A stretch of DNA of 64,000 nucleotides from positions 228,483 to 292,482 of the forward strand of contig JAPMXV010000010.1 of assembly GCA_026936335.1 (NCBI GenBank). The letters are read 5' to 3'. Made by a program: the position numbers and the translations under genes. Under the pieces are notes generated by a model that did no database searches, was not told the DNA's origin, and worked only from the letters and a program-made list of their open reading frames with translations. This document shows positions 1 through 63,554 of this stretch, piece by piece. Source of the DNA: Mantamonas sphyraenae STR306 (Eukaryota; Protista; CRuMs). The first letter of the stretch is position 1. Every line of letters starts with the position of its first letter.

Positions 1-2484
1 GAAAAGGCGGCTCAGCTGCGCACACTGCAACGTCAGGTGTGGGAGCTGTTGCCTCGGTTCTGCATCATGCCCGTGGATTGTGCGGAGGAGTTTCCCAACA
101 TGGCCAAGAACCTGGCGCAGACGATGAAGCGGCATCCGCAGTGGCAAAAGGTGATTTGCAGGGGCCTGCGCACGCTGATCCAGTCGAATCGCCGCGTGGC
201 CGGACGCACCGACGACTTTCTGGAGTTGGAGGATGTGAAGAAGGAGGCGTTTGGCACGAGTGGCCAGCATAGCGAGGATGTCAAGGCCAACCGGGCGGCG
301 GAGGAGGAGCAGAAGGCCATGGCCTCGTATCCGTTTGATGAGGCACGTGCAGAGGAGCATTTGGCGTCGGTGACGCGGTATGCAGGCAACTATCTGCCGA
401 TTCTGTTTGGGGTGTTTACACGCACGCGTCCGGGCGACCGACAGGTGGTGGCCGAGTGCATCATGGAGTTTGCCAGTGTGAGCGAGAGCGAGGTGGTCAC
501 GAAACACTTCAACCAGGTGATGAACAGACTGATGAAGTTGGACATGGAAGACGGTGACGAGGAGGATGAGGGCGAGGGTGAAGAGGTGGGCGAGGGTCAA
601 ACGCCGGCCGCGGTGCGCAGGCACAATCTGACGGAACTGGGCATCTGTTTGGTGCACTCGTTGGACGACGAGAGCGTGGGCCACCTGTACGAACTGATGC
701 GTCCGTACCTGGAGGACGAAGACCACACACTGCAGAAAAAGGCGTACAAGATGCTGCGTCGCATGTTCCGCACCCATCCGGATTGGATGCGAGCCAACGT
801 GGACGATCTGATGGCCACCCTTGCCGAGTCGCTGGTGGAAGTGACGTCGGAAGCCAAACAGTTCCGCATGCCGTGTTTGCACTACCTGGTGAGCCAGCTG
901 CAGGGCGAGGACATTGCGGTGATTGAAGACCACATCGCAGAGGTGGTGCTTGCGCTGAAGGAGCAGAACGACGACGCGCGGCTGCAGGCGTACGACCTGT
1001 TGGTGTCCATGTGTGCAAGGTACAAGGAGCTGCCGCAGGGGGCCAGCCAACTGACCATGGGCGACGGCGCAGACGAGCAGGAGGATGAGCAGGAGGCATA
1101 CACACCGTCGCTGGCGGAGGAGAACGTGACCCGATTCTTCCAGATTGTGATGGCGGGTCTGGCCAAGATGGACGAGGAGTCGCTGATGGCCACGTCGACG
1201 ATTTCTGCGCTGGGCAGGCTGATGTACGAGTTCCACAGCGACCTGCCGGACCACGTGTGCACGCAGATCATCGACGCCATCCTGCCGTTCCTGCAACAAG
1301 GGGACAAGGCGATTGTGCGCGTGGTGATCGGCTTCATCAAAGTGTGCATCATGCGTCTGGAACCTGGTCTGTACGAAGATCTGCTGGGCCCCATGATCAA
1401 GGGCCTGCTGCACTGGTCGGCCAACTCGCGACGTGAGCTGCGCCTGAAGGTCAAGGTGATCTTTGAGCGCATGATGCGCAAGGTGGGCTACCACGCCATG
1501 CTGGACCACTTTCCCACCAAACACCGACGCTTCATTGCCACCATCAAGAACGAACACGAGGCCAAGCTGCGCAACCGTGCCAAGGCGCGTGAAGCACACA
1601 TGGAGGCCAACGCGGCGGCGGCGCACCACGAGCGTGTGCTGGCACGCGCACGCGAACAGGGACGCAAGACAGGTGGCGGACCTGGAGAGCGCGCACCCAT
1701 GGACAAGGACGACCTGGGAGGACTGCGACGCAAGACGGAAGGGACGTGGTTGCAGGAGGCCGGCGACGACGATCCGCTGGACTTTTTGGGGGCGAGTGTG
1801 AACCAGCGTGTGCTGTCCACGAAACCGCAGGCACGAGGGAGCAAGAGTGCACTGGACGAGGACTCGGACGACGATGTACAGATTGGCAAGGACGGCCGGG
1901 TGGTGGTGCGAGACGACGATTCGGACGAGGAGGGTGCCCAGTCGGGCGACAAACGCAAACGACGCGCAGACGACACGGGTCTGGAGGAGATGTACAACGA
2001 GGACGAGTTTTTCGACGCCAACGCACGCAAGTTTAAGCGTGCACGTGAGGTGTACGGCAACGGCCTGGTGGGGGAGGAGGACTCGGATGGGGAGTGGGAC
2101 GACGACGAAGACATGGTGGAGCGCGAGATGCGTGGCAGGCGGGGCACAAGCAGCAGCGGCAGCAGCCGACGTGGTGCAGGCGGTGCAGGCGGTGCGGGTG
2201 GCAGTGGAGAGGGTGGCAAGGGCGGAGGGCGCTCGGGACGTGGCAAGCAGCTGCGCGAGGCCAGAGAGAAGTTTGGACGCAAGTACAGGGGCAAGGGCAA
2301 GGGCGATGTGCCTCGAGAGGGCCAGTACCAGCCTGTGGAGTACGTGCCATTGCCCCCGACGCTGAACAACAAGCGGAACAAGAAGGAGAAGCACCAGGTG
2401 AACAACATGCTCAAAGCAGCCAAGATGGGTTCGCTGCAAGGGGCCAAGGGCCGTCGCAGGAAGCAGAGGCAAGGGAGGAAGTGA
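1..2484 (+). CDS. RRP12: RRP12-like ribosome biogenesis HEAT-repeat protein (5'-partial)
   Basis: Frame is open from base 1. Motifs QVWELLPRFC, LQKKAYK and DDPLDFL, and a basic C-terminus with KGKGDV, are typical of RRP12. AATAAA at 2571-2576. Confidence 0.88.
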   Translation, partial: EKAAQLRTLQRQVWELLPRFCIMPVDCAEEFPNMAKNLAQTMKRHPQWQKVICRGLRTLIQSNRRVAGRTDDFLELEDVKKEAFGTSGQHSEDVKANRAAEEEQKAMASYPFDEARAEEHLASVTRYAGNYLPILFGVFTRTRPGDRQVVAECIMEFASVSESEVVTKHFNQVMNRLMKLDMEDGDEEDEGEGEEVGEGQTPAAVRRHNLTELGICLVHSLDDESVGHLYELMRPYLEDEDHTLQKKAYKMLRRMFRTHPDWMRANVDDLMATLAESLVEVTSEAKQFRMPCLHYLVSQLQGEDIAVIEDHIAEVVLALKEQNDDARLQAYDLLVSMCARYKELPQGASQLTMGDGADEQEDEQEAYTPSLAEENVTRFFQIVMAGLAKMDEESLMATSTISALGRLMYEFHSDLPDHVCTQIIDAILPFLQQGDKAIVRVVIGFIKVCIMRLEPGLYEDLLGPMIKGLLHWSANSRRELRLKVKVIFERMMRKVGYHAMLDHFPTKHRRFIATIKNEHEAKLRNRAKAREAHMEANAAAAHHERVLARAREQGRKTGGGPGERAPMDKDDLGGLRRKTEGTWLQEAGDDDPLDFLGASVNQRVLSTKPQARGSKSALDEDSDDDVQIGKDGRVVVRDDDSDEEGAQSGDKRKRRADDTGLEEMYNEDEFFDANARKFKRAREVYGNGLVGEEDSDGEWDDDEDMVEREMRGRRGTSSSGSSRRGAGGAGGAGGSGEGGKGGGRSGRGKQLREAREKFGRKYRGKGKGDVPREGQYQPVEYVPLPPTLNNKRNKKEKHQVNNMLKAAKMGSLQGAKGRRRKQRQGRK

Positions 2485-2521
2485 CGAGGTTGGTGGGAGA
2501 AAGGCAACGTTTGTTCTTTGC

Positions 2522-2615
2522 GCAGGCCTTTGCGACCGACCGTGAACACTGCTGTGCTTTGTTGAAAAACAATAAAAATCCATCCTTTCGATGGTAGTCG
2601 GTCGCAAATCCCTGC
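2522..2615 (-). ncRNA. Candidate Fanzor omegaRNA scaffold (structured element 3' of the Fanzor ORF)
   Basis: Perfect 12-bp inverted repeat 2529-2540/2597-2608, extended by 5 bp (2522-2526/2611-2615) after a 2x2 internal loop. It encloses three small hairpins. It lies about 70 nt downstream of the Fanzor stop. Function is inferred from position. Confidence 0.5.
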
Positions 2616-2681
2616 CGTCACCCGCCCGTCGCCCCGCCCGCCTTTAGTCTGTGTTGTTTTGTGCGATTGTGCGATTCACTC

Positions 2682-5600
2682 TTACTCCTTGCGCAGTTGC
2701 GCCCGTTGCTTGCGCCACCTCCTCGATGACAGCTTTGTGTGAGTCTTCCTGTCCACGCCCGAGATTGCCACCACCAACAGAGTGGCGATGGTCACCGCAG
2801 CGTCCGTATCCTTGTGCTGCGCCCATCGTTCGCAGCGTGCGCAGTCCCACCATCTTCGGCTACAGCCCCGCCTCGTGTACGATTTCGGGCTCAGGGTCAC
2901 CTGGTGTCCACACTCGCGGCACAGAGCAGAGGTGTACGCCTCGCGTGTGACCACGAGCGTATGTGTACGACTCAGGTGTCTCTTGACGTCCGCCAGAGGG
3001 ACCCGCGCACTGAAGCCGCCGTTCCCAAAAGCAAGCAGGGAGCGCTGCTGGACCAGCCTGTCAATGTCCGAGATGGAGGCCGAGATGCCAGCAAGGTACC
3101 TGTTGCGGAGCTTGCGGTGTTCGTAATGATGCGCATCCACGAGGTTCCGGTGCGGCTCTCGCTGTGCAAACTCTTCCCGCTTTGCTTGGTTCAGTTCTTG
3201 CCATGTCGGGGTAGAAGAAGCAGATGATGATGGTGATGATGATGAGGAGGAGGAGGATGATCGTGCGTTGGATCGTAGCGTACGTCGGGATGCTGCTGCT
3301 GCTGCTGCTCTGCATCTTCTGACTGCTTCCGTGGCAGCCTGGGTCAGGACGTTCTGCTTCTTCCTGAGCTGACTGGTCCGCAGCATATGTCTGTAAGATG
3401 GTGTTGGCAATGGAAAGTAGATACCTGCGTCCACGTGCAGAACATTGTCGCGATCGAGTGTCGCTGACATCTTGTTGTGGTGAAAGACAGCGACGCAGCT
3501 GGTGCAGTCAACGTTGGGGTCCATCCCGATTACAGGTATACCAGCAGGCGTCCACAAATCGTTCTGCCCTAGTGTACGGGCCACCTGTTTGTCTGACTCG
3601 AGCAAGATTCCAGTGCGCTTGCCAGCAGAAGTTTGCGATGGCTCGCACTCCGCATCCAGGTGCTGCATGACGTCTGTAAGGCTGCTCTCGTCGACACCAG
3701 ACTCTTCAAACCACTGCTCCAGCTTGGGCATGGCCGCTCTGCCGTACGCTTGATAAAAGAGGCTCGCCATATGCATGACGTGGAACCACGATAGATCCCG
3801 CACCCGACCCTTCGCGTCGAACCCAACACGGACACATGCGACACGCAGTGCCTCGTCGACGTCTGATGCTGCCACGCAGCCCTGAGCCCCTTTCAGCTTT
3901 CGACGGGCTCCAACAGCCAGGCTATGAGGGGCGTAGACAGTTTGATAGATAGATCGACCGTCGTTGCCACCGAGGGTGATCCCCTGCCCTCGAGTCTCCT
4001 GCCCTGTGTCTGAGTTCCAGAGCCCCGGTAGAACGAGCATGGTGACTGCGTTTACAAGGTCACCCCGGTGGGCTGCCCATCCAGCTTCCGTCCTCATAAT
4101 GCCGACATGTGTTCGCCCTTTGATCCTCTCCAGTGCACGCTGTGAACCTGGGCACAGAACAGCAGCGTGGTCCACAATAAGCTGGTTGAGCTGGCGAGCG
4201 AGCACGTTTGACTTTGCTCGCTCATCCCAGGGCAACGTCTCGATGATCGCGGTGGCGGCTGCTGCTGCTGCTGCTGCTGCTTCGCCTCCCCTCGTACTCA
4301 AGTGCTTCAGAAAGTCGTATGCGACCCGAAACAGCTTGTACTTTAGATCGTAGCCGGACACAGAGACCGTACAGCGTGCTGTAGCGTGTGGGCGAGGTAC
4401 AAGCTGGACAGCGTGGCCACATTGCTCAGCCTCCAATTTGAGCAGACAGATGTAGGACGCGACACGGGCCTGGTTCTTCTCGTCCTCCTTTGCCTTTGAG
4501 AGCAAAGGCGAGCCAGCCACGACCTTGCTCACCTTGTCCTTCAGCGGCTGCAGCTGCGTCCTCCAGTCCATCTGCTGCTGCTGCGCAACCACAAGCGCCT
4601 CTTCATGGTCCTGGTCTTGGTCCTCATCTCGATCCTGCTCGTGATCTTGGTCTGCTTCCGGTTCTCCATCGTCGTCGACCTCGTCCACCTCCTCGACCTC
4701 CTCTGCTTTCACCCTCTTCTTCCATGCTGCGAGTGACATCCCCGACACGTATGCGCATGCCACCTCTGTCAGCTTCCGCGGGAGCTCCGGCACAGCATTG
4801 GACACCATCCTTTTCACCGATGAAGTCCAGTGTCTGGTCGCAAGGTTCCACATGGTCCTCATCTGACGTGCAGCTGACCCCTCAGCCAGCAGATTCTCGA
4901 GTTGCTGACGCTGCTCCTCAAGCTCCAGGCCGTCGTAGTATGGACTCGCAGTATGGGCGCACAACACTCCGTACAAGAGCTCCCGTTCCTGCACGAAGCG
5001 ACTGTGAGTGTCGAGCAGGACTGCTTCCAATTCCTGGCGTTGGCTCTCAGTCATCCTGCTGTCCGCTGCGTCCTGAATAGTCCCACGTGCCACGGTTGTG
5101 GATTTTCCCGCCAGTCCCATCACTCGTTCCACGCCTCCGTGTCCACGGCCGTCATGCATCCCGTACACACCAGACAACGCCTGTTCCTCAGTCGGGCGGC
5201 GGTCGTTTAGCAGCGCTGCAACCTTCCGTCCAAGCTTGTAGAACGATTCACGCTCAGCTGTGCGCGCCTCGTCAATCTCATCCTCATTGTCCTCTTTGCT
5301 TGACTCCTGTACGTAGCAGACATCCTTGCCACAGAGCAGTTTGGCCAAACGGCCCTTCAAGTAGGTGCCCTTGGCCAACATCGAGTCACACAGTGTCTCC
5401 ACCTCGTCGCGGTTGCTGCATGAATCAAGTTTTCCCGCCTCGACATCCGCGAGCAGCTCCTCTCGCTTCTTTTCGACTGCCTTCTCGAACTGCTGCATGT
5501 TGTCGTACCTTTTTGCCTTCTTCTTTGCCTTTTCAATCTCCTCCTGCAGCTCAGTCTGCCGTTCAATCGCGTTGTCGAGCGAGGCACGCTCCCGAGCACC

Positions 5601-8198
5601 CAGCTGAAGCCGTCCTTGCTCCGCAAACGCATCGACGATGTCCGACATCCTACCATCGTCGCTGTCGACACGAATGGTGTATGTCCTGGCGTTCACCACA
5701 CCGTCCCTGAGCGCCATTGATGGGCCCGGGGCAGGTGCAGGTGCCGTTTGGTTTGGTTTGTGCTCCGGCACCCGCGTGTTCCTCGCCAGCTCCGTCAAAT
5801 CGTCCACGGAAGACGCCAAAGAGTAATCCGCACACAGTTGGCGCATGACATACTTGAGCTGCGTACTGGTCCTTGTTCGCATGGCCGGGCGAACGGATGC
5901 CAACGCGAGACGCAGACCGCCCGAATCGCCCAGAGCCGGGCCCAGCTCGTCGGCGCTGTCGGCGCTGGATGTGGCATATGTGTCCTCACGTGCGCTGGGC
6001 ATTGCATGTGCCTCTTGCATGTCCTCTGTCTGCATCTCATCCGACTCCACTTCGTTTTCCAAGTCCTCTTGCTCCGCCCCGGCTCTTCCGTCGGCCTCCC
6101 AGGCCTTTACAAACGCCTCTTCATCCTGGACATCCTGGACACCATTCTCAAGGTCCTCTGTCTCCATACCCGACTCCACTGCGTCGTCAGCGACCTGGTC
6201 CACCTCCCCGGTTTGCACATCTTCGTCATCTGCGCTGGCGTCGGCCTTCCAGACCCTGTATGCCTTGGCGAACGCATCCTCGTCCATGGTGACGTCGTTT
6301 TCCCGTTCGTCATCGATTTGTACCCCCAGCGTCTCGGCCAACAAGGTCACCTGTTCCACCATGCCGCTCCTCGCCTCCTTGATTTCGACATCCGACGCGC
6401 GTCCACGAGCAGGTGCTGTCGGCTCAAGCGTGGAAGCCTGCACGTTGGAATGAATGATTTGGTCCACAGCGTTCTGTACACACCACTTCTGTTGTTGTTC
6501 GGCAACGCGCTGTACACAGTCGCAGATGCGTTCGCGATGGAAGTGGAGAAGGCCCACGGGAGCACGCTGTACAATGGCGCCCGCACAGGTTCCACCCAAA
6601 AGCGCATACGTGAAGAAGCGTGCGTTTGTGCTGTCGTTGCCCATGTGCACCGCTCTCAAATCGACTGTGTTGCCAGCACGGTACTCGTTCCAGTTGTCCT
6701 GCCGGCACCAGCCGCACCGGACGCCTCTCGCCATGAGTGCACAAGCGTCTGCACCCACCACGAGTGCATCTGCGGCGTGCTGAATGGCGCACAGGTTTGC
6801 ATCGTCTGTTGGCAACACACAAAGGCCCTGGTCCACCCAAACGTTCCCGTCGTCGCTGATCGAAACGCGGTCGTTGTCCGCACTCCTCAGGGTCTCGTAC
6901 AGCCCACGCAGCCGGTGTTTTTTGGTGTACGTGTGTACGTGCGCGTCCAGCTCCTGCCGGAATGATGCAGGGATCGCATGGATGGCCGCCAGAACCAAAT
7001 CCATCCCCGCCTCCTCGACGCTGCCTTCCTTGGCGCTGCCATCCTCCACGCCGCCGAGTATGAAGTGGTCGAACCCAGCAACTTCAATGTCGTCGGCAAA
7101 GCGCTGGACAAGCGGACGCACGGACCGGACAAGTTTAGCCAGGGTGGCCGTTTCTGCGAACGCGGCTGAGACAAAGCTCCACGTCCTCACCGGACGGCCC
7201 TCAGGTGGTGTGGTACATTCCAGTGGGACGTACGTGGTCATACCCTCGGGTGACATGCGAGCGAGCGCCTCGACGATGTCATCGCCACTGGAATTTTCGT
7301 TCAGCTGCTGATCGAGAGCATCGCCGCCGTTGGTCAGCACAACGGCGTTGTAGTCCCCCAATGTTGCTGGTTTCGGTGCAGGAAGAGGCACGCGAGCACC
7401 AGCTTGACCGTAAGGCTTGGCACGCTTCGCCGTTGATGCTTCGGGGGCGAAAGAGGCGTTGGCGTGTCCCGGCTTGATGTGAAACGAAGGACAGGAATCG
7501 CTTGTTCGGCCTATCATACGAGCGCTGTATGTTCGGCCAAAGTGCTTCCCCACGTACCTGGCCACCTCTTTGGCAGAGAGCCTCGCCGCAGCAAGTGTGC
7601 ACTCACACGCGTCGCCCTTGCGGGCTACTTCAATGCACAGCGCATACTCAGACATTGCGTAGACGCGGCCACCGTGAATGAGAGATGCCTTCAGCAAGTG
7701 GCTGATGCTGAGCCAGCACAGGTCATCGTTTCGCCGCGAGCGTGAGCGTGTTTGCTTGAGAAAAGGCCAGACCTGGGTTGTGAACCGCTTGCGTGCTTCC
7801 TTGGCGCGTCTCAGCAACGTGGGGCTGGCTTGGCATTTTGTGGTACTGATGTGATGCAGAAACTCCGTCTGCTCGGGGTACTGCACCCTCGCCTGCGCCC
7901 ACCGTTTGGGCTGCTTTTTCTGCGTGCCTTCGCCAGTTTTGAGCGCCGTGTACATCTGCCGTGCTTGATCTGTTCGAATGTCGTTGAGAAAGTGTGTGCG
8001 TACAAAGCGGTGTTTGCTCCGTTGCCTGGTGGGCCTTCTAGGTTTGACGGTGTGCCACGAGGAGGAAACCCAATCTGACTCCGGCTCGACCTGGATATCG
8101 GTATCCATGGGGTCTTTCGTGACCGTGTCTTTGCCTTTGCTGTCTGCCTCAGTTTGCTGACGAGTGTGTGTGTGTGTGTGTGTCGTGAGGGGTCCCAC
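2682..8198 (-). CDS. Fanzor1: Giant Fanzor1-like (TnpB-derived) RuvC RNA-guided endonuclease
   Basis: 1838-codon ORF with no interruption. RuvC-I VIGMDP (Asp 3519-3521), AFGNGGF (Gly at the canonical RuvC-II site), relocated Glu in REAYTS (2940-2942), zinc finger CREC...CARC, RuvC-III KDTDAAVTI (Asp 2808-2810). The first in-exon ATG is at 8108; an upstream exon is likely. Confidence 0.88.
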   Translation of the reverse strand: MGPLTTHTHTHTRQQTEADSKGKDTVTKDPMDTDIQVEPESDWVSSSWHTVKPRRPTRQRSKHRFVRTHFLNDIRTDQARQMYTALKTGEGTQKKQPKRWAQARVQYPEQTEFLHHISTTKCQASPTLLRRAKEARKRFTTQVWPFLKQTRSRSRRNDDLCWLSISHLLKASLIHGGRVYAMSEYALCIEVARKGDACECTLAAARLSAKEVARYVGKHFGRTYSARMIGRTSDSCPSFHIKPGHANASFAPEASTAKRAKPYGQAGARVPLPAPKPATLGDYNAVVLTNGGDALDQQLNENSSGDDIVEALARMSPEGMTTYVPLECTTPPEGRPVRTWSFVSAAFAETATLAKLVRSVRPLVQRFADDIEVAGFDHFILGGVEDGSAKEGSVEEAGMDLVLAAIHAIPASFRQELDAHVHTYTKKHRLRGLYETLRSADNDRVSISDDGNVWVDQGLCVLPTDDANLCAIQHAADALVVGADACALMARGVRCGWCRQDNWNEYRAGNTVDLRAVHMGNDSTNARFFTYALLGGTCAGAIVQRAPVGLLHFHRERICDCVQRVAEQQQKWCVQNAVDQIIHSNVQASTLEPTAPARGRASDVEIKEARSGMVEQVTLLAETLGVQIDDERENDVTMDEDAFAKAYRVWKADASADDEDVQTGEVDQVADDAVESGMETEDLENGVQDVQDEEAFVKAWEADGRAGAEQEDLENEVESDEMQTEDMQEAHAMPSAREDTYATSSADSADELGPALGDSGGLRLALASVRPAMRTRTSTQLKYVMRQLCADYSLASSVDDLTELARNTRVPEHKPNQTAPAPAPGPSMALRDGVVNARTYTIRVDSDDGRMSDIVDAFAEQGRLQLGARERASLDNAIERQTELQEEIEKAKKKAKRYDNMQQFEKAVEKKREELLADVEAGKLDSCSNRDEVETLCDSMLAKGTYLKGRLAKLLCGKDVCYVQESSKEDNEDEIDEARTAERESFYKLGRKVAALLNDRRPTEEQALSGVYGMHDGRGHGGVERVMGLAGKSTTVARGTIQDAADSRMTESQRQELEAVLLDTHSRFVQERELLYGVLCAHTASPYYDGLELEEQRQQLENLLAEGSAARQMRTMWNLATRHWTSSVKRMVSNAVPELPRKLTEVACAYVSGMSLAAWKKRVKAEEVEEVDEVDDDGEPEADQDHEQDRDEDQDQDHEEALVVAQQQQMDWRTQLQPLKDKVSKVVAGSPLLSKAKEDEKNQARVASYICLLKLEAEQCGHAVQLVPRPHATARCTVSVSGYDLKYKLFRVAYDFLKHLSTRGGEAAAAAAAAATAIIETLPWDERAKSNVLARQLNQLIVDHAAVLCPGSQRALERIKGRTHVGIMRTEAGWAAHRGDLVNAVTMLVLPGLWNSDTGQETRGQGITLGGNDGRSIYQTVYAPHSLAVGARRKLKGAQGCVAASDVDEALRVACVRVGFDAKGRVRDLSWFHVMHMASLFYQAYGRAAMPKLEQWFEESGVDESSLTDVMQHLDAECEPSQTSAGKRTGILLESDKQVARTLGQNDLWTPAGIPVIGMDPNVDCTSCVAVFHHNKMSATLDRDNVLHVDAGIYFPLPTPSYRHMLRTSQLRKKQNVLTQAATEAVRRCRAAAAAASRRTLRSNARSSSSSSSSSPSSSASSTPTWQELNQAKREEFAQREPHRNLVDAHHYEHRKLRNRYLAGISASISDIDRLVQQRSLLAFGNGGFSARVPLADVKRHLSRTHTLVVTREAYTSALCRECGHQVTLSPKSYTRRGCSRRWWDCARCERWAQHKDTDAAVTIATLLVVAISGVDRKTHTKLSSRRWRKQRAQLRKE

Positions 8199-8249
8199 AC
8201 GTGTGTGAGCCGCAGCAAACGGAATTGAGTGAGGCGGAATTCAACCTAC

Positions 8250-8603
8250 TCGCCCGTTGCCACTTCTGCTCGAGGAGGAGGAGGCTGAAGACGTTGAACG
8301 AGATGCACGGCCTCGACGGCCTCGGGATGCGCTGCGGGATGCACGGGATGCGCGACCTCCCCTGGAATGTGTCTCTTGGTTCTGTACACGTTGCCGTTTC
8401 TGCTGTCGCCACTCCAACGTTTGCCTGCTCCTTCGTTCACGTCTATTTTCCCGAGCCTCAACGCTACGCGGTGAATGAGATACCTCATCCCGTGTGTCTT
8501 CATCGTCTCGACCCCTCTTGCCGCCCTCATCACACAGCAGCAAGAGAACCAACATGAAGAAGAACCAACGGAAGCGCATGTTGTTTTGGCGACCACGGCG
8601 CAT
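8250..8603 (-). CDS. Putative upstream Arg/Ser-rich exon of the Fanzor gene
   Basis: GTAGGT donor at 8249 and (CA)n-TCAG acceptor at 8157 give a 93-nt phase-0 intron that joins this ORF in frame to the Fanzor ORF. Confidence 0.45.
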
Positions 8604-9217
8604 AGTCGAGCAGTCACTCGTACATTCTCATTCCAACGTGTAGGGTGGCGTTGACAACATTCATTTCGGTGTCCCAGGGTCCTCGCGGCTCTTGCGAGGA
8701 ATCGTTCTGCAAACACATCGAGCTTGTTCAACATGGTGCACTTACGCATGATCGAACCGTAAGAACCCGCAGAAGAGCGAAATCATGTCTTGGTGAACAT
8801 TCTATGTGTTTCTGGGCGTTGTTCTCAAGGGTGGAGCCACGTTCACGCTCAATTGCAACCGGCTGCGCACAGTGTTCAAATGCAACCCCCACAATGGCAA
8901 GGACAAAGTGCATCCCAAGGGCACCGCGCACGTACGTCGTTGCATGGGAGCAGGTGCGGCCTGCTTTGAAACGAAACGGAGAGAACGTGGTCCGAGAGGT
9001 GCTGCGAAGCATCACCGAGCTCAAAATGCCGGACGGCAGGATGAGTGCAAAGACGGAAAATTTGGGAGATGCCAAAACGCAGGTTTTGTTGGGAATGTGT
9101 GGGAACGTGACAGTGACGACACTGGAGCTGCGAACGGAAGCGAACAGCCTGAAAATTCATTCCTGCACCTTGCAAACAACGATCGAGAGAGGAGGAGTTC
9201 ATTCCTGTGCACCTTGC

Positions 9218-11268: not shown

Positions 11269-12750
11269 TTACTCGGCATTCTCGGCGAAAAAGTCCTTGC
11301 AAGTCTGGACCACATAGTCGCGCTGTTCCTGAGTGAGCTCGGGGAAGATGGGCAGCGAGAGGAGCTGAGGGGCAGCCTCGGTGGCCACGGGCAGCTTGTC
11401 GGTGAAGTGCTCGAGGTTCTTGTAGCAGCCGAGCTTGTGGATGGGGATCGGGTAGTGGATGCCCGCGCCGACGCCACGCTCGTTCAGGTAGTCCTTGATG
11501 GCGTCACGGTGCTTGGTGCGCACGACATACAGATGCCACACGGGGTCGGCCCAGTCCGAGGTGGTGGGCAGCACAAAGTCGCCCACGCCCTCCAACTGCT
11601 TGTTGTAGTCGGCGGCACTCTCCTTGCGGCTGTTGTTCCAGTCGTCCATGTACTTGAGCTTGACATCGAGCACGGCGGCCTGCACAGTGTCCAGGCGCGA
11701 ATTGCCGCCCTCGCTGTCGTGGTGGTACTTGACCTTGGAGCCCCAGTTGCGCCAGAGACGAATCTTCTCGGCGAGCTCAGTGTTGTTGGTCACCACACAG
11801 CCGGCGTCACCGTATGCACCCAGGTTCTTGCCCGGATAGAAGGAAAAGGTGCCCATGTCACCAAAGGTGCCGATGCGCTTGCCCTTGTACTCTGCGCCGT
11901 GGGCCTGCGAGCAGTCCTCGATGACCAGCAGGTTGTACTTCTTGGCAATCTCCAGAATCGGGTCCATGTCAGCCGGGTGGCCGTACAGGTGCACCTGTGT
12001 GTGGTCAATCCGTGTGCGCCGATGTCCACAGCAGGGCGTGCGTGCAATGAGCAGTGTCAGCAGGCCGTATGTGCACCAGGAGTCCGGAAAGAGGGCTTCC
12101 GGGACGCGGGCTCCCGTGAGCCGACCGTTTCCGGAAACAACGCGGGCAAAAAACGTACAGGGATGATGGCCTTGGTCTTGTCGGTGATGGCCTCCTCGAG
12201 CTTGCTCACGTCCATCATCATGTTGTCCTCGCAGCAGTCGACCTGAGAGTGGGCGCCCGTGGTGTCAGCATGCCTGTCTGTTGCGTGGGTCGGGGAAACG
12301 TGGCGCACGAGGCTACACGGACAAAAGGCAAAACGCAGCACCCGGCCTCGCTGCAGCCAAATCCAGCATGCAGCATGCACACACACACACACACACACGC
12401 TCTCCAACCTGCCCCACGCGCTCACTTACCAGCACAATGTCGGCGTCGCAGTTCGAGGCACCCTGGCAGGTGGCCACAAAGGTGTTGGCTTGCGTGATGA
12501 CCTCGTCACCTGCGGTGACGCCCGCAGCCCAGCAGGCGATCTCGATGGCGTCGGTTCCGTTTCCCACACCAATGCAGTGGTCCACACCCACCCACTTGGC
12601 AAAGTTATCCTCAAAGGTTTTCATCTGCGGACCCTGGATGAAGGCGCACGAGTCGATCACCTCGTGGATCGCCGCGTCCACCTCTTCCTTGATCACGTTG
12701 TAGTTGGCCTTCAGGTCAACGAGCGGAATGTTCATCTTTGCGCTGGACAT
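11269..12750 (-). CDS. DegT/DnrJ/EryC1/StrS-family PLP-dependent nucleotide-sugar aminotransferase
   Basis: Motifs [47 protein letters not shown] (PLP Lys) and NSRLD. Exons 12430-12750, 12159-12242 and 11269-11994. Confidence 0.93.
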
Positions 12751-55203: not shown

Positions 55204-56276
55204 ATGGAATTTGTGCGGGAGCTGTTGCTGAAGGCAGTTCTGGTGAGCATGCCGTGGCTGGATTATGTGGAGCGAGTGAGGAACCCGGTGTTGGACGCAG
55301 TGTTCCAGGTGGCGTCGTTTAGCGGGGAGGAAGACTTTTTCGCAGGAGCGATTCCAACTGCGTTTTGGTTGTGCGGGTCGCAGTTTGGGCGGCTGTTTCA
55401 AGTGCTGTTGACGGCGACGCTGTGGGGCGGGAATGGACTGAAGAACGCTCTGGCTCTTCCGCGGCCGAAAACGGTTCGCGGACTGCAGTGTCGGGACTAC
55501 GGGTTTCCCGAGCACGCACAGCATGAATGGGGTGGCGATCCCGCTGTCGCTGGCGGCGTATGGGATTGCGCGAGGGATGGTTTCGGAGGCGTGGTGGGGC
55601 TATGCGGTGTTTTGGGCGGTGTTGGTGATGGCAAGCCGATTGTACCTGGGCGTGCACTCGCCGGCGGATGTGGCGGGAGGGGCAGTGCTTGGATACTGGC
55701 TGTATGCGTGGAGCGGGTGGTAGTAAGTGTGGATTGAGGAGGGTGGGGAAGGTGTATGGAGCGGGGGAGAGCGTACGATGTGCAGGGTGCGGGCGCGGGA
55801 GGGGCTGACACGGCAGAGCGGCAGTGTGGAGGAGGCAGATGCGTTCTTGGTGGCTTCTGGGAGCGTGGGTCTGTGGGTGAGTGTGGTGGGCCCGGCGGTG
55901 CTGGCGTGGGCGCACCCGAGGTCGGTGAGGGCGACGCAATCGATGGGCGAGTCGACGCTGGTGTGTGGGATGCTGAGTGGAATTCTGGTAGGGGGACAGG
56001 GCGGAGAGTGCTTGTTGGTGCCTGGAAGCGGTTGGGGGCGGGAAGAGGTGGGCGTTCTATGGGACGCTGCTGGGACTTGGGTTTGCGGTGCTTCTCGGGA
56101 TTCGGGCAGCTGTCAAGGCGATGCTGCGGGAGATGCTGGACAGGGTGTACGGCCCAAAGTGGGAGCTGGAGTATGCGATGGTGTTGAAGTATGTGCAGTA
56201 CGTGGTGGTGGGGTGGATGATTGCGGTCGGTGTGCCGGCGTTGCTTGTGGAGGCGGGTGTGGCGCAGTGGGGATGA
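55204..56276 (+). CDS. PAP2-family lipid phosphate phosphatase (sphingosine-1-phosphate phosphatase-like; apparent frameshifts near 55508 and 55991)
   Basis: KNALALPRP, YGFP|STH (across a frameshift) and SRLYLGVHS. Intron 55723-55824. Confidence 0.8.
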
Positions 56277-56377
56277 AGAGGGAGTGAGGGAGTGAGGCGT
56301 GGAAATGAAGGGTGGGTCGAGTTGTGGAGAAAGGTTGCGGATGGTGTGCGGGAGGTGAGCCAAAAGGAAAAGCAGGG

Positions 56378-56938
56378 ATGAGTGAGGCGGGGGCAAGCAA
56401 TGGGATGGAGATGGAGGTGCTCGGGGTGGAAGATGCAGAGTGCGCGTGGGAACTGGACCAGGAGGCGCATGGGAAGTACGAGGCGCTGTCGTTGGAGGAG
56501 TGGAAGGAAAAGCTGGAGCGGAGCGGAGGCCGTGCGGCGGCGCAGATGGGGCTGTGGAGTGGAGATGTGCTGTTGGCGATGGGAGGGTATGTGTTTATTC
56601 CGAAGGATGCGGTCGTGGTGAGCGTGTGCGTGCGGGACGGGTTCAGGAGGCTGGGGCTGGGGCGGCACGTTGTGCGTGTGCTGGTGAAGCAGGCAAAGGA
56701 GGCGCAGGGGTTGGAGGTGGACTGGGTGCGGATGGTGGTGCGAGAGGACGATGAAGCGGGACAGTCGTTTGCAAAAGGCATCGGGCTGGGGAGGACAAAG
56801 CAGGGGAATGTGGAGGGGTTGGTTTACGCCGGCAAGGCGCAGGCGGTGGCGGATAGTGGAGGCACGGTGGACTGGGCGGCAGTGGAGGAGAGGGGAAAGG
56901 GGGAGGTGGGGATGGATGAGTTGGAGTTGGTGCTGTAG
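56378..56938 (+). CDS. GNAT-family acetyltransferase-like protein
   Basis: Acetyl-CoA motif A VCVRDGFRRLGLG, followed by VREDDEAGQSFAKGIG. Confidence 0.6.
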   Translation: MSEAGASNGMEMEVLGVEDAECAWELDQEAHGKYEALSLEEWKEKLERSGGRAAAQMGLWSGDVLLAMGGYVFIPKDAVVVSVCVRDGFRRLGLGRHVVRVLVKQAKEAQGLEVDWVRMVVREDDEAGQSFAKGIGLGRTKQGNVEGLVYAGKAQAVADSGGTVDWAAVEERGKGEVGMDELELVL

Positions 56939-56990
56939 GGTGTTGGCGGGGTGGGGGAAGGAGGGGGGGGGCGCGGGCGGGGGCACGTGA

Positions 56991-57499
56991 ATGGAAATGT
57001 CGGAAAATGCACACAAGATGACAGAGTTGATGGTAGCGGCAAAGGAGGGCAAGACGGAGGAGGTGGAGGCGTTGTTGGAAAAGGGGGCGGAGTTGGAGGC
57101 GGAGGATGAGTACGGCTGGACGGCGTTGATGTTTGCAGTGCACAATGGAAAGAGGACGCGGCGCTGGCGCTGCTGGGTGCAGGGGCAAAGGCAACAGGGG
57201 CTCGGCATCGTGGGTGGACGTTTGTGCTGGCTGCGGCGCAGGCGGGGGTGGAGAGCGTGGTGAAAGCGGTGCTGGCGGCAGGCGGAGATGCCGAGGTGAG
57301 CAAGGCGGAGGAGGAGGGGACGACGCCGTTGATGGTGGCTGCGGAGAACGGGTATGTGGAGATTGTGCGCATGTTGTTGGAGGCTGGGGCGGAGGTGAAC
57401 GCGATGCACTTTGTGGAGGAGACGACGGCGTTGTCGCTGGCGCAGGAGAACGAGGAGGACGTGATTGTTGGGTTGTTGGTGGCTGCTGGGGCCAAGTGA
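56991..57499 (+). CDS. Ankyrin-repeat protein (one frameshift near 57150)
   Basis: TELMVAAKEG, GWTALMFA and GTTPLMVAAENGYVEIVRMLLEAGAEVN. Confidence 0.8.
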
Positions 57500-57726
57500 G
57501 GGTGGAGAGGAAGTGAAAATGTGTGGTTTGTCGCGTGGAGAGGAGGCGGGGAGGGATTGGGAAGGCTCGTCTTGCTTCTTGCGGGGGTGGGTCCAACGCA
57601 TCTTGCACACACACGCACACGCACAATAGTCATAGGGTAGGGAAGGGCGGGGGTATAGAGGCTTGTGGGTGGGATAGGGAGGAAGAAACGTCAGGAAGGG
57701 CTGACACGTGGAATATCGCAGGAAAA

Positions 57727-57960
57727 ATGGGGTTGGGAAAAGATGAATGGGTTCAATTGTTGCAGAGTGGGGACCATGGGCGGATTGTGGAAGCTTTGGA
57801 GGCTCAAGGAACGGTGAGTTGGCGCGGGAAAGAGCCGGAAGGGCTTTGTGATCGTCGCACAACGAAGGGAAGGAGGGATGGGTGTGGGTGGGTGGGACGT
57901 GTGCTGACATGTTGCACATAGGAATTGGACCTTGCACAATGGGGGCTGGGGGGCAAAGGA
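57727..57960 (+). pseudogene. 5' fragment of a probable LRR gene, truncated
   Basis: A 29-codon exon, a canonical intron 57814-57921, then ELDLAQWGLGGKG (RI-like LRR start), after which similarity stops. Confidence 0.35.
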
Positions 57961-58091
57961 CGCATGTGGGCGAACACAAACGATGCTGACAAGAAAGGGA
58001 GGACGACGATGTGGTTGTTGCAACCACCGCATGGGCTGACGTGGAGGTCTGTACGCGAGAGGGTTCATTGGATGTGATGAAACTGAACACC

Positions 58092-58920
58092 TCAAGCTCT
58101 GCATGTGCACAAGAAGTTGCCACCTCGCTTTTGGCGACAAACACAACGACGGTTCCGGGGAAACTTGATCCTTCTGGATCTGGGGCTGCCGCACGAGCAG
58201 GTGAACGTGCCATGTCGTTGTTGACGGCATGTGCAACCACGTCGGTGCATGTGTTTCCTGGCATCGCGCGTACGCTTAGCATGTGCCTTCTTGGCTGCCA
58301 GACGCTTAGCATGTGCCTTCTTGGCTGCCAGGCGCTTAGCATGTGCCTTCTTGGCTGCCAGGCGCTTAGCATGTGCCTTCTTGGCTGCCAGGCGCTTAGC
58401 ATGTGCCTTCTTGGCTGCCAGGCGCTTAGCATGTGCCTTCTTGGCTGCCAGGCGCTTGGCATGTGCCTTTTTGGCTGCCAGGCGCTTAGCATGTGCCTTC
58501 TTGGCTGCCAGGCGCTTGGCATGTGCCTTTTTGGCTGCCAGGCGCTTAGCATGTGCCTTCTTGGCTGCCAGGCGCTTGGCATGTGCCTTCTTGGCTGCCA
58601 GGCGCTTAGCATGTGCCTTCTTGGCTGCCAGACGCTTGTCATGTGCACTTCTGGCGGCAATCTTGGCAGCCTTGGCCTTGTCCTCGGCACGCAACTGATC
58701 ATCACGAGCGATCTGGGCAAACTTGGCAGCCTGCTTTTTGAGGGCTGCCTTGAGCTTGGTCTCGGCCGCTTTGCGTGTGGCTGCATCCTTGGCCTTCTGC
58801 GCTGCCTGCTGGAGTGCAAATCGCCTCTTTTGCTCAGCAATGGCCTTTGCCTTTGCCTGTGCCTTTGCCTCCGCCTGGCGCTTTTTCAGGAACGCCTCCT
58901 GCTTCTTCTTCAAGGCCAAT
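58092..58920 (-). pseudogene. 3' fragment of a Lys/Ala-rich repeat protein with Cys-rich tail
   Basis: (LAAKKAHAKR)12 followed by two CxC-x8-CxC units and a stop. No convincing start; the 5' end abuts the HECT fragment. Confidence 0.5.
58272..58631. repeat. 30-bp minisatellite, 12 copies
   Basis: Unit RCGCTTRGCATGTGCCTTYTTGGCTGCCAG directly visible, head to tail, plus a degenerate 13th copy. Confidence 0.97.
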
Positions 58921-59936: not shown

Positions 59937-62900
59937 TCATTCGAGGCGTTGGCGTTTGGAGGAGGAGGAGGAGGAGGAGGAGGAGGAGGAGGAGGAGGAG
60001 GAGGAGGAGGAGGAGGAGGAGGAAGGTTCTTTGCGCTTGGGGAGGGTGAAGGAGGGGATGGGGTAGGCGTTGACGAGTGCGATGGTGGTGGGGCGGGTGG
60101 TGATGTGGGGTGTGATGCGGTCGATGAGGGTGTGGAGGAGGGTGTGCAGTGTGGCGTCGCTGGGTTGGGGGTTGTCCAACCAGGCGATCATGAGGGAGAG
60201 GGCGGTGACGCCACGGGTGAGCGTTTTGCGGATGGCCTGTTGCACCTGCCGGTAGGTGAGGTGTGGCCTGAGGAGGCGGACAAAGAAGGCCAGGTCGACA
60301 GGCGGCACGCCAACGTTGCCCAGCGCCAGGATGATGTGTCGCACCAGGGACGGCAAGCTGCCGTTGTTGATCAGCTCATGCAGTGCCTGGTGCTCGTGTG
60401 TGTGCTGATGGCGAGGGTACTTGGCAACGCGTGCCTTCATGTGTGTCAGCAGCGTCTGGAACTCACGCGCCGTGCAGCTGCCTCGCTCGTCGCTGGGATT
60501 GGCTCTGCTCCAACCTCTGCGCACAGACTCAGGATGCCACTTTTCCACCTCCGTGGTGGTGAGGTGGTGGTCGTAGTCGCATTGTGTCCAGTGTGGGTCG
60601 CTGTCGTCGTCAGCAGGGCGTCGTGCTTTCTGCAGCCACAGCTGGGTCTGCTCGTGCTGCTTCCAAGTGGTGGGATGGGCTCTGTCGCCGAGAGTGTCCA
60701 TCTCTGTCATGAGCAGGTGGAGGAGGGCGTAGATGGGGTCGCCGTAGTCGTGTGGCTCCTCCAGCCAGCACACCTTCAACCCACCCTCTGTCACACCCAT
60801 GGCCAGACCAGCGTGGAGGATAGCATGTCTGCACGCTTTTTGATCCACGTCACGGCCGAGAAGGGTGAGGCAGAAGGCCATGTCGCCCTGGGAGAGGGGA
60901 ATTTTGCCCAGAGCGAGCAGAATCTGTCGGACCAGCGTGGTCAGGGTGCCATGGCAGACCACAACACGCGCTTGTAGGGTCATGAGGTCGGGGATGTCGT
61001 CGATGGGATGACCGTTGGCCAGGGTGTGCATGTGGTTCAGCAGTGCCGTGTGCTCCTTCTTGTTGCTGTGGCTGCGCTCGCTCTTGCGCCAGGACGTCCA
61101 GCCACTGCGCACAACGCCATCTGGCAGTCCATCCTCCACGGCCATCTTCTCCTCCTTTGTGGGCTCAGGCAGAACGAGCTCGGGGATGTCGAGGGCATTG
61201 ACGGCGTCGAACGTGGTGGGCCTGGTGGTGATGTGGGGTGTGATGCGGTCGATGAGGGTGTGGAGGAGGGTGTGCAGTGTGGCGTCGCTGGGTTTGGGGT
61301 TGTCGAGCCAGGCGATCTTGAGGGAGAGGGAGGTGACGCCGCGGGTGAGGGTGTAGCTGATGGCATGTTGCACCTGCTGGTAGGTGAGGTGTGGCCTGAG
61401 GAGGCGGACAAAGAAGGCCAGGTCGACAGGCGGCACGCCAACGTTGCCCAGCGCCAGGATGACGTGTCGCACCAGGGAATGCAGGTTGCCATTGTTGGTC
61501 AGTTCACGCAGTGCATTGTTCTCGTGTGAGTGCTGATGGCGAGGGTGCTTGGCTGCGCGTGCCTTCATGTGTGCCAGCAGCCTTTGGAACTCCCGCGCCG
61601 AGCAGCTGCCACGTTCGTCGCTGGGATTGTGCGCTGCCCAGCCACTGCGGACAGACTCAGGATGCCACTTGTCCACCTTGGTGGTGGTGAGGTGGTGGTC
61701 GTAGTCGCATTGTGACCAGTGTGGGTCGCTGTCGTTGTCAGCTGGGCGTCGTGCTTCCTGCAGCCACTGCTGGGTCTGCTCGTGCTCCTTCCAGGTGGTG
61801 GGATGAGGCGTGTTGCCAATATTGTCCATCTCTGTCATGAGCAGGTGGAGGAGGGCGTAGTTGGGGTCGCCGTAGTCGTGTGGCTCCTCCAGCCAGCACA
61901 CCTTCAACCCAGCCTTTGTCACACCCATGGGCAGACCAGCGTTGAGGATGGCAAGGCTGCACCCACGTTGATCCATGTCATGGCCGAGAAGGGTGAGGCA
62001 GAAGGCCATGTCGCCCTGGGAGAGGGGAATTTTGCCCAGAGCGAGCTGAATCTGTCGGACAAGCGTGGTCAGGGTGCCATGGCAGACCACAACACGCGCC
62101 TGCAGGGTCATGAGGTCGGGGATGTCGTCGAAAGGATGCTCGTAGGCCAGAGTGTGCATGTGGTTCAGCAGTGCCGTGTGCTCCTTCTTGTTGCTGTGGC
62201 TGCGGTCGTCGCTGTGTCCCAATTTCCACCCTTTGCGCTCAACACCATCTGGCAACTTGTTCGTCTTGTTCACGCCTGCTTTTTTCCGTGTGCCCGTGTC
62301 TCCGTTCTTGGCCCTCCTTGCCAGTGTGCTCGACGTTCCTGTCTCGGTGCCACTGCCAGCCATGACCCTGCGCCTGCGCTGTCCGCTGCCTTTGGTTAGT
62401 TGCGGATCAGTACGACACTGGCCTCTGCGTCGTTGTGTGCGGCCTCGACTTGTGCGTCTCGGCTGCCACTCGTCCGAGTCCTCCTGCTCCATGTCGTCTA
62501 AGTCGTCGTCGCTGTCGTCCTGCGGTATGTACTCCTCATCCATGGCATCAGCAGTGTCTGTATTGGTGATTGAGCCCTGAGTTTCCAACTCGTCGTCCAC
62601 GTGCTGCTGGGTTGCGTCCTTTGCCTCGCCGTCTTCTTCGTACGCCTCCATCCATGAACTGGTCATCCACACTGAGTTGCTGGAGATTGACCATGGTTCA
62701 CGGTGGCCAAAGTTCAGAAACATCAGGTCCTCCACATCGCCGGTGTCATGTGTGTGTGTGTCCTGGGCTGCGTCGTCGTCGTCGCTGTCTCCAGTCTGCC
62801 GTGTGGCCTGGTGGGAGGAGGACGACGATGTGGTGGTGGATGTGGTGCGTGTGATGCCGACAAAGGCAGGGCTGATGCGTTTGGGGACGCCGTTGTGGTT

Positions 62901-63554
62901 TGTGTTGGGTTGAGTAGGCGGAGGCTGCAACGGAGGCTGAGAGAAGTGCATCTGGGCCGTTTGTCGCGGCTGGGGAGGCGGCGGAGGAGGGTAGGCGTAG
63001 TATGGGTGACTCTGATGAGCATATGCATGGTGTTGCTGAGAGTGGGTGTTGACAGGGACCCAGATGATGGGTGGTTGTGGGTGCTGGTACGGGTTTTGTA
63101 CGCCTTGGGCGGGCAGCATGTTCGGAAACGGCTGGGCAGCCATGGGAGGGACCATGTACGCGTAGCTGTGTGGGGAGACGGGGACGGTGGCAATGCGGGG
63201 TGGGGACGGTGAGCGGAAGGCGGAATGGACGCTGTCAGAGCAGAAGCGGGGGTGAAGGAAGGCTGGAACGAGCAGAGAGGGAAAAGATGGAAGGAGGGAG
63301 GCAGACCAGGAAACTGGCAACGGAGAGGGCAGTGACAGGGGAGAGGGGATCGGAGAAGAGCGGAGAAGACAGCAGCGGTGGTGATGGGGAAGTGGAGATG
63401 CAGGGGAGGAGTGTAGATAAGCGACGGAGACATGGAGGAGGTAAGGAAGCGGGAGAAGCGGGCAGTCAGAAAACGGAGTGGAAGGCAGAACGCACGCTGG
63501 GTAGTTGTTGGGCGTGTGTTGTTGCTTCGGAGTGCTTGAGTAGTCTTTGTCCAT
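59937..63554 (-). CDS. Telomere-adjacent orphan protein with internal 376-aa duplication
   Basis: ATG at 63554, probable phase-2 intron 63166-63495, Pro/Gln-rich and acidic N-terminus, two copies offset by 1128 nt, basic C-terminus. Confidence 0.7.
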   Translation of the reverse strand: MDKDYSSTPKQQHTPNNYPACVLPSTPFSDCPLLPLPYLLHVSVAYLHSSPASPLPHHHRCCLLRSSPIPSPLSLPSPLPVSWSASLLPSFPSLLVPAFLHPRFCSDSVHSAFRSPSPPRIATVPVSPHSYAYMVPPMAAQPFPNMLPAQGVQNPYQHPQPPIIWVPVNTHSQQHHAYAHQSHPYYAYPPPPPPQPRQTAQMHFSQPPLQPPPTQPNTNHNGVPKRISPAFVGITRTTSTTTSSSSSHQATRQTGDSDDDDAAQDTHTHDTGDVEDLMFLNFGHREPWSISSNSVWMTSSWMEAYEEDGEAKDATQQHVDDELETQGSITNTDTADAMDEEYIPQDDSDDDLDDMEQEDSDEWQPRRTSRGRTQRRRGQCRTDPQLTKGSGQRRRRVMAGSGTETGTSSTLARRAKNGDTGTRKKAGVNKTNKLPDGVERKGWKLGHSDDRSHSNKKEHTALLNHMHTLAYEHPFDDIPDLMTLQARVVVCHGTLTTLVRQIQLALGKIPLSQGDMAFCLTLLGHDMDQRGCSLAILNAGLPMGVTKAGLKVCWLEEPHDYGDPNYALLHLLMTEMDNIGNTPHPTTWKEHEQTQQWLQEARRPADNDSDPHWSQCDYDHHLTTTKVDKWHPESVRSGWAAHNPSDERGSCSAREFQRLLAHMKARAAKHPRHQHSHENNALRELTNNGNLHSLVRHVILALGNVGVPPVDLAFFVRLLRPHLTYQQVQHAISYTLTRGVTSLSLKIAWLDNPKPSDATLHTLLHTLIDRITPHITTRPTTFDAVNALDIPELVLPEPTKEEKMAVEDGLPDGVVRSGWTSWRKSERSHSNKKEHTALLNHMHTLANGHPIDDIPDLMTLQARVVVCHGTLTTLVRQILLALGKIPLSQGDMAFCLTLLGRDVDQKACRHAILHAGLAMGVTEGGLKVCWLEEPHDYGDPIYALLHLLMTEMDTLGDRAHPTTWKQHEQTQLWLQKARRPADDDSDPHWTQCDYDHHLTTTEVEKWHPESVRRGWSRANPSDERGSCTAREFQTLLTHMKARVAKYPRHQHTHEHQALHELINNGSLPSLVRHIILALGNVGVPPVDLAFFVRLLRPHLTYRQVQQAIRKTLTRGVTALSLMIAWLDNPQPSDATLHTLLHTLIDRITPHITTRPTTIALVNAYPIPSFTLPKRKEPSSSSSSSSSSSSSSSSSSSSSSKRQRLE
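59958..60023. repeat. (GGA)22 microsatellite encoding poly-Ser
   Basis: Directly visible. Confidence 0.95.
60040..62258. repeat. Tandem direct duplication, about 1128-bp unit x2
   Basis: For example GGTCGACAGGCGGCACGCCAACGTTGCCCAGCGCCAGGATGA occurs at 60293 and 61421. Confidence 0.93.

Follow-up and report, generated by a model that had tools for sequence, protein, structure and literature searches.

The 64,000-nucleotide stretch of the Mantamonas sphyraenae STR306 genome analyzed here (contig JAPMXV010000010.1, positions 228,483 to 292,482; referred to below as the window) carries a DNA transposon whose sole cargo is the gene of a Fanzor approximately three times the usual size. The host is a single-celled marine protist, and Fanzors are eukaryotic relatives of the RNA-guided DNA nucleases of CRISPR-Cas12. 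Published Fanzors average 620 amino acids (aa) and reach ~800 aa (PMC10530073, PMC10711439), whereas the window protein has ~1,840–1,940 aa, so the unusual size noted in the initial annotation of this stretch holds against the published maximum (PMC10711439). We favor, with a probability of roughly 0.62, the reading that this protein is an active nuclease which, guided by RNA, cleaves the element-free site, thereby restoring or spreading its element by homologous repair. The observed basis of this reading consists of the element ends and their duplication, the copy number, the selection acting on the gene, the fold of the nuclease lobe, the conserved triad residues, a folded RNA candidate, and a left end shared with transposase-bearing elements. 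Coordinates are collected in Table 1.

The seven motifs listed in the initial annotation are all present at their residues (D1413, D1560, G1725, E1753, C1760/C1763, C1786/C1789, and D1797). In an alignment of 20 C-terminal sequences with 14–76% identity, D1560, G1725, D1797, and three of the zinc-finger Cys residues are invariant and E1753 is nearly so. The Glu of E1753-AYTSAL-C1760 is situated six residues ahead of the zinc finger; in the Fanzor arrangement the catalytic Glu likewise precedes the zinc finger by six residues, and Gly or Pro occupies the canonical site (PMC10711439, PMC10530073). The pattern of the TnpB/Fanzor superfamily, D-X(125,275)-[TS]-[TS]-XX-C4 zinc finger-X(5,50)-RD (PMC3627910), is represented by D1560, T1756-S1757, C1760/63/86/89, and K1796-D1797, with Lys in place of Arg. 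The Pfam family PF07282 (TNB zinc-ribbon) matches residues 1747–1804 with E values of 7e-5 to 1e-4, narrowly missing a cut-off that the sister copies clear, and no Pfam family matches the rest of the giant protein.

The AlphaFold2 (AF2) model, which covers aa 1367–1838, has the RuvC order of strands and helices, with pLDDT (predicted local distance difference test) scores of ~70–85 in the core and <50 for aa 1367–1473. When fold matches were ranked among 48,161 chains (Foldseek/VIA), the top 14 were all TnpB, Cas12, or Fanzor save one RuvC resolvase, with Z of 10–12. The whole nuclease lobe of SpuFz1 (residues 375–633) matched with Z of 11.6–11.7 over 215–223 aligned residues, the root mean square deviation being 5.8 for the match with Z 11.7 and 223 residues. 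D1560, E1753, and D1797 each sit where expected, at the end of a strand or helix of the model, with local pLDDT of ~70–78. Profile and fold, the check proposed in the initial annotation, therefore agree (PF07282 just under its cut-off, SpuFz1 at Z 11.7), and the identification of a TnpB/Fanzor split RuvC that has a zinc finger and the rearranged (Ealt) site is supported. The same annotation likened NDGRSI (D1413) to the Fanzor1 TDG motif, a likeness that found no support: the site reads NDG, HRG, or HDG among sister sequences (HRG/HDG in the sister copies), precedes D1560 by 147 aa, and falls in the region with pLDDT <50.

The genome searched comprises 25,061,354 bases in 78 contigs, with ~59% GC and TTAGGG ends; the published M. 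sphyraenae assembly is diploid, 25.06 Mb in 78 contigs, with 59.19% GC (PMC10492846). A count based on the C-terminal 472 aa, which the initial annotation had called for, yielded nine copies including that of the window, on different contigs: five others at 96–97% identity and three at 64–68%. The five close copies have unrelated flanks, and the transposon appears to be recently active. Eight of the nine copies are in open frames of 1,780–1,861 codons; in one close copy, at C55:390835-397048 (genome G000), the frame is broken into 815 and 582 codons. The ratio of nonsynonymous to synonymous substitution rates (dN/dS) is 0.17–0.27 across the last 972 codons and 0.10–0.47 by segment, below 0.5 in all measurable segments, and the surroundings of E1753–D1797 are the most conserved part of the protein (88–96% aa). 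That the locus is situated between RRP12 and a kelch-repeat gene with no transposase beside it might suggest a domesticated single-copy host gene. This idea is already largely refuted by the terminal inverted repeat (TIR), the target duplication, and the five other copies at 96–97% with unrelated flanks on different contigs, and we regard its probability as negligible.

The unbroken open reading frame (ORF) of 1,838 codons annotated at 2682–8198 was recovered; it is on the minus strand. Its opening codons are a CA-repeat followed by an acceptor-like TCAG, and a GTAGGT donor lies 93 nt upstream. The 118-aa frame farther upstream is open in seven sisters (97–99% in five close copies, 78% in C29, and 39% in C8); exon and long ORF were searched separately as protein. 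Since the GTG start at 8198 falls within the probable intron 8157–8249, that start is probably intronic and the protein probably has ~1,940 aa rather than 1,838. We also rejected a very short intron near the end of the frame, at the stop codon, since two copies do not keep its acceptor AG.

Could the ORF overstate the protein, an ordinary Fanzor standing at the end of a frame that derives from a separate upstream gene or from unspliced introns? Introns do occur in host and sister genes, only DNA runs were found for the locus, and the relatives in Mantamonas plastica are dissimilar outside the C-terminal lobe. However, 1,780–1,861 codons are open in eight copies, down to 36% identity; dN/dS is well below 1 from aa 867 onward; and an M. 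plastica transcript has a complete ORF of 1,836 aa. We therefore consider this explanation improbable.

The element is delimited by sister-copy homology, which ends on the right at 2523 in all copies, with unrelated flanks beyond, and on the left at ~8860–8865; no transposase is found within 2523–8865. The transposon, its ends, its family, and the intron all go beyond the initial annotation. Left ends of the sister copies were examined by coordinate-only searches and short motif tests. The flanking dinucleotides are equal on both sides in all three testable copies (CG in the window copy on C10, TT in C45, and AC in C55), which would occur about once in 4,000 by chance. The target is TG-NN-CA: at position 3 the right flank reads C in eight of nine copies and CA in five, and TG-NN-CAG fits eight left ends, with four left ends lacking CAG at the expected place. 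Positions 4–7 of the left end (8859–8862 in the window) vary among copies otherwise 96–98% alike, reading CCGG, GTGG, CGCC, or TTGG. A left end starting at GG with an IS607-like core and a 6-bp target site duplication (TSD) were both dropped in view of CAG-N4-TTGC and the matching dinucleotides.

A non-TA target is unusual for an IS630/Tc1 partner. Together with the large unexplained protein surface and the co-occurrence of DDE transposases, it lends something to the idea that a Fanzor–omegaRNA complex selects insertion sites for a partner transposase (RNA-guided transposition) instead of cleaving empty sites. Yet the flanks of the nine copies have nothing in common beyond TG-NN-CA, a palindrome as is typical for a dimeric transposase, the triad is intact, and many copies are without a transposase; we give this idea little credence.

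The right end of the element, 93 nt long, is predicted to form a 13-bp stem enclosing three hairpins and a short terminal stem that uses the last bases of the element, CCTG. Its fold has a z of −3.44, and none of 200 shuffles was equally stable. In eight sister copies 88–92 of 92 nt are identical, with one compensatory pair; the terminal stem is predicted in all copies and its pairs never vary, by a folding method that does not model pseudoknots. No Rfam family matched the 93 nt. An AATAAA follows the stop codon in the sisters and is mutated in the window copy. The combination of a structured, conserved right end and a variable flank, a feature of Fanzor omegaRNA loci, is thus present in the window family. 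In Fanzor1 systems the target-adjacent motif (TAM) includes the 5' TSD, and the scaffold includes the 3' TSD (PMC10711439, PMC13565253); by analogy, the TAM here would be TG-NN and the guide would start at 2520. The earlier proposal of a eukaryotic OMEGA effector is supported, in the form of a mobile OMEGA-type effector, by a gene that is transposon-borne and has an omegaRNA candidate at its element end.

Four elements, on C59, C11, C43, and C46, share ~100 nt of the left end at 87–91%. Some 0.85 kb inside, a frame of 355 codons encodes an IS630/Tc1 DDE_3 transposase, and 7–10 kb farther along comes a large Fanzor-like frame. Three of the four also show TG-NN-CAG left junctions in which NN is non-TA. 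Because these elements share the left end of the window element, their DDE_3 transposase is its likely mobilizer. The four may represent an IS630/Tc1 subfamily with a non-TA target. Also related by its end is a deletion derivative of ~0.85 kb (L021:2000-2846, minus strand), in which a window-family left end is fused to a 3' end like that of L050-family copies; it is inserted just past a family-B element and is possibly a "ghost" omegaRNA element. Five more right-end-only matches exist.

For splicing, omegaRNA production, the TAM, cleavage, homing, the identity of the mobilizer, and the role of the extension, we infer the following. An IS630/Tc1-type DDE transposase would recognize the shared left end and move the element in trans by cut-and-paste, and insertion into TG-NN-CA would duplicate NN. 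A transcript running across the right end of the element would give rise to the omegaRNA, with the last ~93 nt (probably plus the duplicated bases) as scaffold and host flank as guide. The loaded protein would read TG-NN in the left flank as its TAM while the guide pairs with the right flank. Cleavage would hit the element-free site, either after excision or on the empty homologue of the diploid, and repair templated by the filled copy would restore or spread the element; a homing role of OMEGA systems has been proposed (PMC13565253). The extra ~1,100 aa may consist of a recognition lobe that has expanded and, at the N-terminus, an accessory module of unknown fold.

Several observations weigh against this reading. 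The duplications of the window family are non-TA (CG, TT, AC), whereas IS630/Mariner elements normally duplicate TA (PMC13565253), as family B of the same genome does. No empty allele was seen in the read excerpt examined, which at <6,000 letters did not span both element ends. The mean pLDDT of the AF2 model is only 57. The sequencing runs that contain the locus are of DNA only, and no RNA run was found. Synonymous identity rises toward the 3' end in distant copies, from 2/17 to 26/32 four-fold sites, and conservation of the right end is thus due in part to recombination between subfamilies or to transposase binding, not only to RNA constraint. Finally, RuvC-I reads DPN in every copy of the window family, against the Fanzor consensus DPG (PMC10711439), a difference that the initial annotation passed over, and RuvC-III reads KD, off the Fanzor consensus RD. 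The sister families and M. plastica P0003 keep DPG, and DPN is probably a derived change of the window family. The alteration of RDxNA to KDTDA, which had been noted before, was confirmed at K1796-D1797; KD is common to all copies seen and to both M. plastica relatives and is therefore a lineage trait, not decay. By comparison of these sequences, both changes look like derived lineage traits under selection.

The same family-wide changes, along with more than 1,100 aa of additional selected sequence and sister families with other N-terminal enzymes (PIN-like, and a weak USP/UCH match with E 0.002 in L050), would also suit an RNA-guided binder, with omegaRNA and target DNA as its ligands, that cuts weakly, nicks, or does not cut, and whose large N-terminal part acts instead by silencing, chromatin change, or locus protection. 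Dead TnpB derivatives typically lose triad residues, whereas the three acidic residues and four Cys are retained here in copies 62–76% alike and the E1753–D1797 region is the most conserved. On balance we find such a binder unlikely and retain the cutting nuclease. The description "catalytically intact" in the initial annotation can be kept for the conserved triad residues alone, with their convergence in one site and the activity of the protein as predictions.

More than half of the giant protein appears to be without known counterpart. Residues 240–600 stay in frame throughout, at 94–96% in close copies and 63% and 36% in distant copies, and they gave no match in Pfam, PHROG, PDB, or Atlas. 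In a HMMER scan of 1.84 billion proteins the only outside relatives came from the M. plastica transcriptome, with transcript ORFs of 1,637 aa and 1,836 aa, both complete, and one of 791 aa. Their similarity is confined to the nuclease lobe (34% across 118 aa), and the window family groups with them with support of 92/83. Giant size is thus also present in a second Mantamonas species, at the RNA level. Two of the four scan matches, P0001 and P0002, were dropped as low-complexity repeats. The N-terminal extra of the longest M. plastica isoform (P0005:1-200) looks faintly XPG-N-like by eye, with no Pfam or sister-profile score. Queried with the C-terminal region, the 20-sequence C-terminal profile, and the N-domain profile, a collection of 5.8 billion protein sequences gave no match, a weak blank given the restriction to 0.55–1.75 times the query length and to shared words. 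No relatives were found in JGI metagenomes, IMG/VR, or phages, and a literature search found no paper mentioning Fanzor with Mantamonas or Fanzor with XPG.

A profile search of the genome revealed ~50 loci whose open frames, 1,300–2,250 codons long, end in a Fanzor-like C-terminus. Thirteen proteins of two sister groups (L032–L043, L048) have conserved acidic motifs (xADD, DxD, GD) in the N-terminal ~300 aa, and a low-confidence model of this domain (pLDDT 53) gave weak matches enriched in PIN/FEN-like nucleases, including Xrn1, T4 RNase H, T5 exonuclease, XPG, and GEN1, at Z 5–6, below the deciding level. For the window protein, a PIN/FEN domain placed by eye in two registers was rejected (the profile of 13 sister sequences gave −1.8 bits, a score matched by 33 of 200 shuffles, and hhalign a probability <1%), and an OTU-like Cys motif gave no score. 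As the window protein fails the PIN-like profile, the two-nuclease reading of the sister loci does not appear transferable to it, although it may hold a fully degenerate PIN-like copy.

Other loci of the genome show further variety. Loci L044–L047 are ordinary-sized Fanzor2-like genes of 630–850 aa. In family B (L017–L028, L032, L033), giant Fanzors number at least 13 copies; the TIRs are short, TA is duplicated, and no transposase was seen in L032/L033. Locus L037 of family C has a 13-nt direct repeat at both ends that was not seen in its sister L039, and families C and E have a near-identical IS630/Tc1 transposase segment. A piece resembling the USP/UCH His-box is found near the N-terminus encoded at L050:5288-6787 (minus strand; Pfam UCH, weak, E 0.002). 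As a speculation that we hold to be rather doubtful, Mantamonas might harbor a radiation of active RNA-guided nucleases of 1,500–2,200 aa, in which a Fanzor lobe is joined to exchangeable N-terminal enzyme modules (PIN/FEN-like, deubiquitinase-like, or of unknown fold) on IS630/Tc1 elements with a non-TA target; the module of the window protein would then bring a second RNA-targeted activity to the cut site.

Table 1. Features of the giant Fanzor element in the window and of related transposase-bearing elements
Feature	Position	Strand	Remarks
Non-autonomous DNA transposon, CAG...CTG ends	2523..8865	−	6,343 bp; limits of sister-copy homology
Left end, imperfect 30-bp TIR	8836..8865	−	20/30 complementary to right end
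Left flank TG + target duplication CG	8866..8869	−	predicted TAM side (TG-NN), by Fanzor1 literature
Right target duplication CG	2521..2522	−	2 bp
Right flank beginning CA, predicted guide	2500..2520	−	different in each copy; putative guide role
omegaRNA scaffold candidate	2523..2615	−	93 nt; fold and sister conservation
First coding exon (probable)	8250..8603	−	118 aa, in phase with long ORF; Arg/Ser-rich, resembling a nuclear localization signal
Intron (probable)	8157..8249	−	93 nt; GTAGGT ... CA-repeat ... TCAG; from sequence only
Giant Fanzor-type ORF	2682..8198	−	~1,940 aa when spliced; first ATG, at 8108, gives 1,808 aa
Conserved N-terminal region	6399..7481	−	aa 240–600; no fold match
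Expanded REC/WED region (probable, by position)	3549..5600	−	aa 867–1550; purifying selection, dN/dS 0.10–0.47
RuvC-TNB nuclease lobe	2685..3548	−	last ~290 aa; motifs, profile, fold
D1560	3521-3519	−	RuvC-I
G1725	3026-3024	−	canonical RuvC-II site
E1753	2942-2940	−	relocated Glu (Ealt)
C4 zinc finger, C1760/C1763/C1786/C1789	2921-2832	−	
D1797	2810-2808	−	RuvC-III, K1796-D1797
Transposase-bearing elements	G000 C59:145834-154473, C11:182434-190968, C43:172224-180706, C46:152986-164516		

The gene is flanked by RRP12 (37–2484, plus strand) and the kelch-like gene, and the right flank of the element is situated just beyond the stop codon of the convergent RRP12. Elsewhere in the window, a minus-strand ORF at 11269–11994 resembles, as judged by eye, a bacterial-type DegT/DnrJ sugar aminotransferase. 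The subtelomeric half, 33000–58000, has a sustained strong positive GC skew (0.2–0.6) across minus-strand genes. An ORF of 927 aa (56057–58840) contains a 30-bp tandem array (58273–58652), and one of 1,257 aa (59937–63710, minus strand) adjoins the telomeric repeat (63821–64000); neither has a Pfam match.

A selected, multi-copy, recently mobile family of ~1,900-aa proteins in two Mantamonas species shows that TnpB, as is known from Cas12, has grown into large multi-domain effectors in eukaryotes also, and to a greater extent there. A direct test can build on the defined ends of the element, on the predicted scaffold and TAM (TG-NN), and on nine natural guides. With a diploid host and recent insertions the proposed homing role is testable as well; it predicts a tendency of filled sites toward homozygosity. 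That an IS630/Tc1-type partner has a non-TA target is unusual in itself. For use as an editing tool the size is a drawback, unless the extension brings a useful activity.

Where, then, does the protein belong among known systems? By its rearranged RuvC-II, zinc finger, TIR element, and structured right end it would work like a Fanzor, with the strict DPG fingerprint absent. The initial annotation assigned it to the Fanzor1 type. For this speak the Gly–Glu pair, the probable DDE element, and the neighbors in Atlas and BFVD, which lean toward the Fanzor1 type; the TDG motif is only putative, and the fold scores tie within 1 Z (11.7 for Fanzor1 and 10.8 for Fanzor2). We somewhat favor Fanzor1 proper, because of the Gly–Glu pair, the stem predicted to close the RNA end, the probable DDE nature of the host element, and the closest folds among viral proteins.

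Like Fanzor1 proteins (SpuFz1, GtFz1, PpFz1, and those of insect viruses and nucleocytoplasmic large DNA viruses), the window protein has a split RuvC in which Gly occupies the canonical RuvC-II site and the Glu comes six residues ahead of a C4 zinc finger. G1725/E1753, 28 residues apart, correspond to the conserved pair G500/E536 of SPu-1-1p; the protein is the single cargo of a TIR element with a TSD, the final bases of whose structured right end are predicted to close a stem; and among the best viral fold matches are proteins from viruses for which Bao and Jurka list Fanzor1 alone. Unlike Fanzor1, it has ~1,840–1,940 aa instead of 600–800 aa, DPN in place of DPG, KD in place of RD, a predicted TG-NN TAM rather than an AT-rich one, a variable 2-bp TSD, and an N-terminal 1,100 aa without known relatives. 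With Fanzor2 and IS607 TnpB (ApmFz2, pro-Fanzors) it shares the Ealt arrangement, and ApmFz2 is the best PDB sequence-profile match (E 9e-5), in the zinc-finger region only. However, its Gly-to-Glu spacing is 28 aa as compared with ~45, it is four times longer, and no N-terminal helix-turn-helix match, serine recombinase, or GG core was found.

The CAG...CTG termini and 2-bp TSD are those of IS630/Tc1-mariner Fanzor/TnpB elements (PGv-1, PUl-1, SPu-1, and the DDE-6 TnpBs of Klosneuvirinae), which likewise comprise Fanzor-only non-autonomous derivatives and, as the window family probably does, autonomous relatives with a DDE_3 transposase; the window family differs in duplicating any dinucleotide in TG-NN-CA rather than TA. 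With Cas12a/b/e/i it has in common the RuvC fold and an enlargement through accretion on the N-terminal side of the nuclease lobe, but it is larger than Cas12a, has no CRISPR array, has a rearranged RuvC-II, and is eukaryotic, probably intron-containing, and transposon-borne. Other giant Fanzor families, in the same genome and in M. plastica, have the same C-terminal lobe and size range; unlike several of these sisters, the window family shows neither the PIN/FEN-like N-domain with five acidic motifs nor the USP-like piece.

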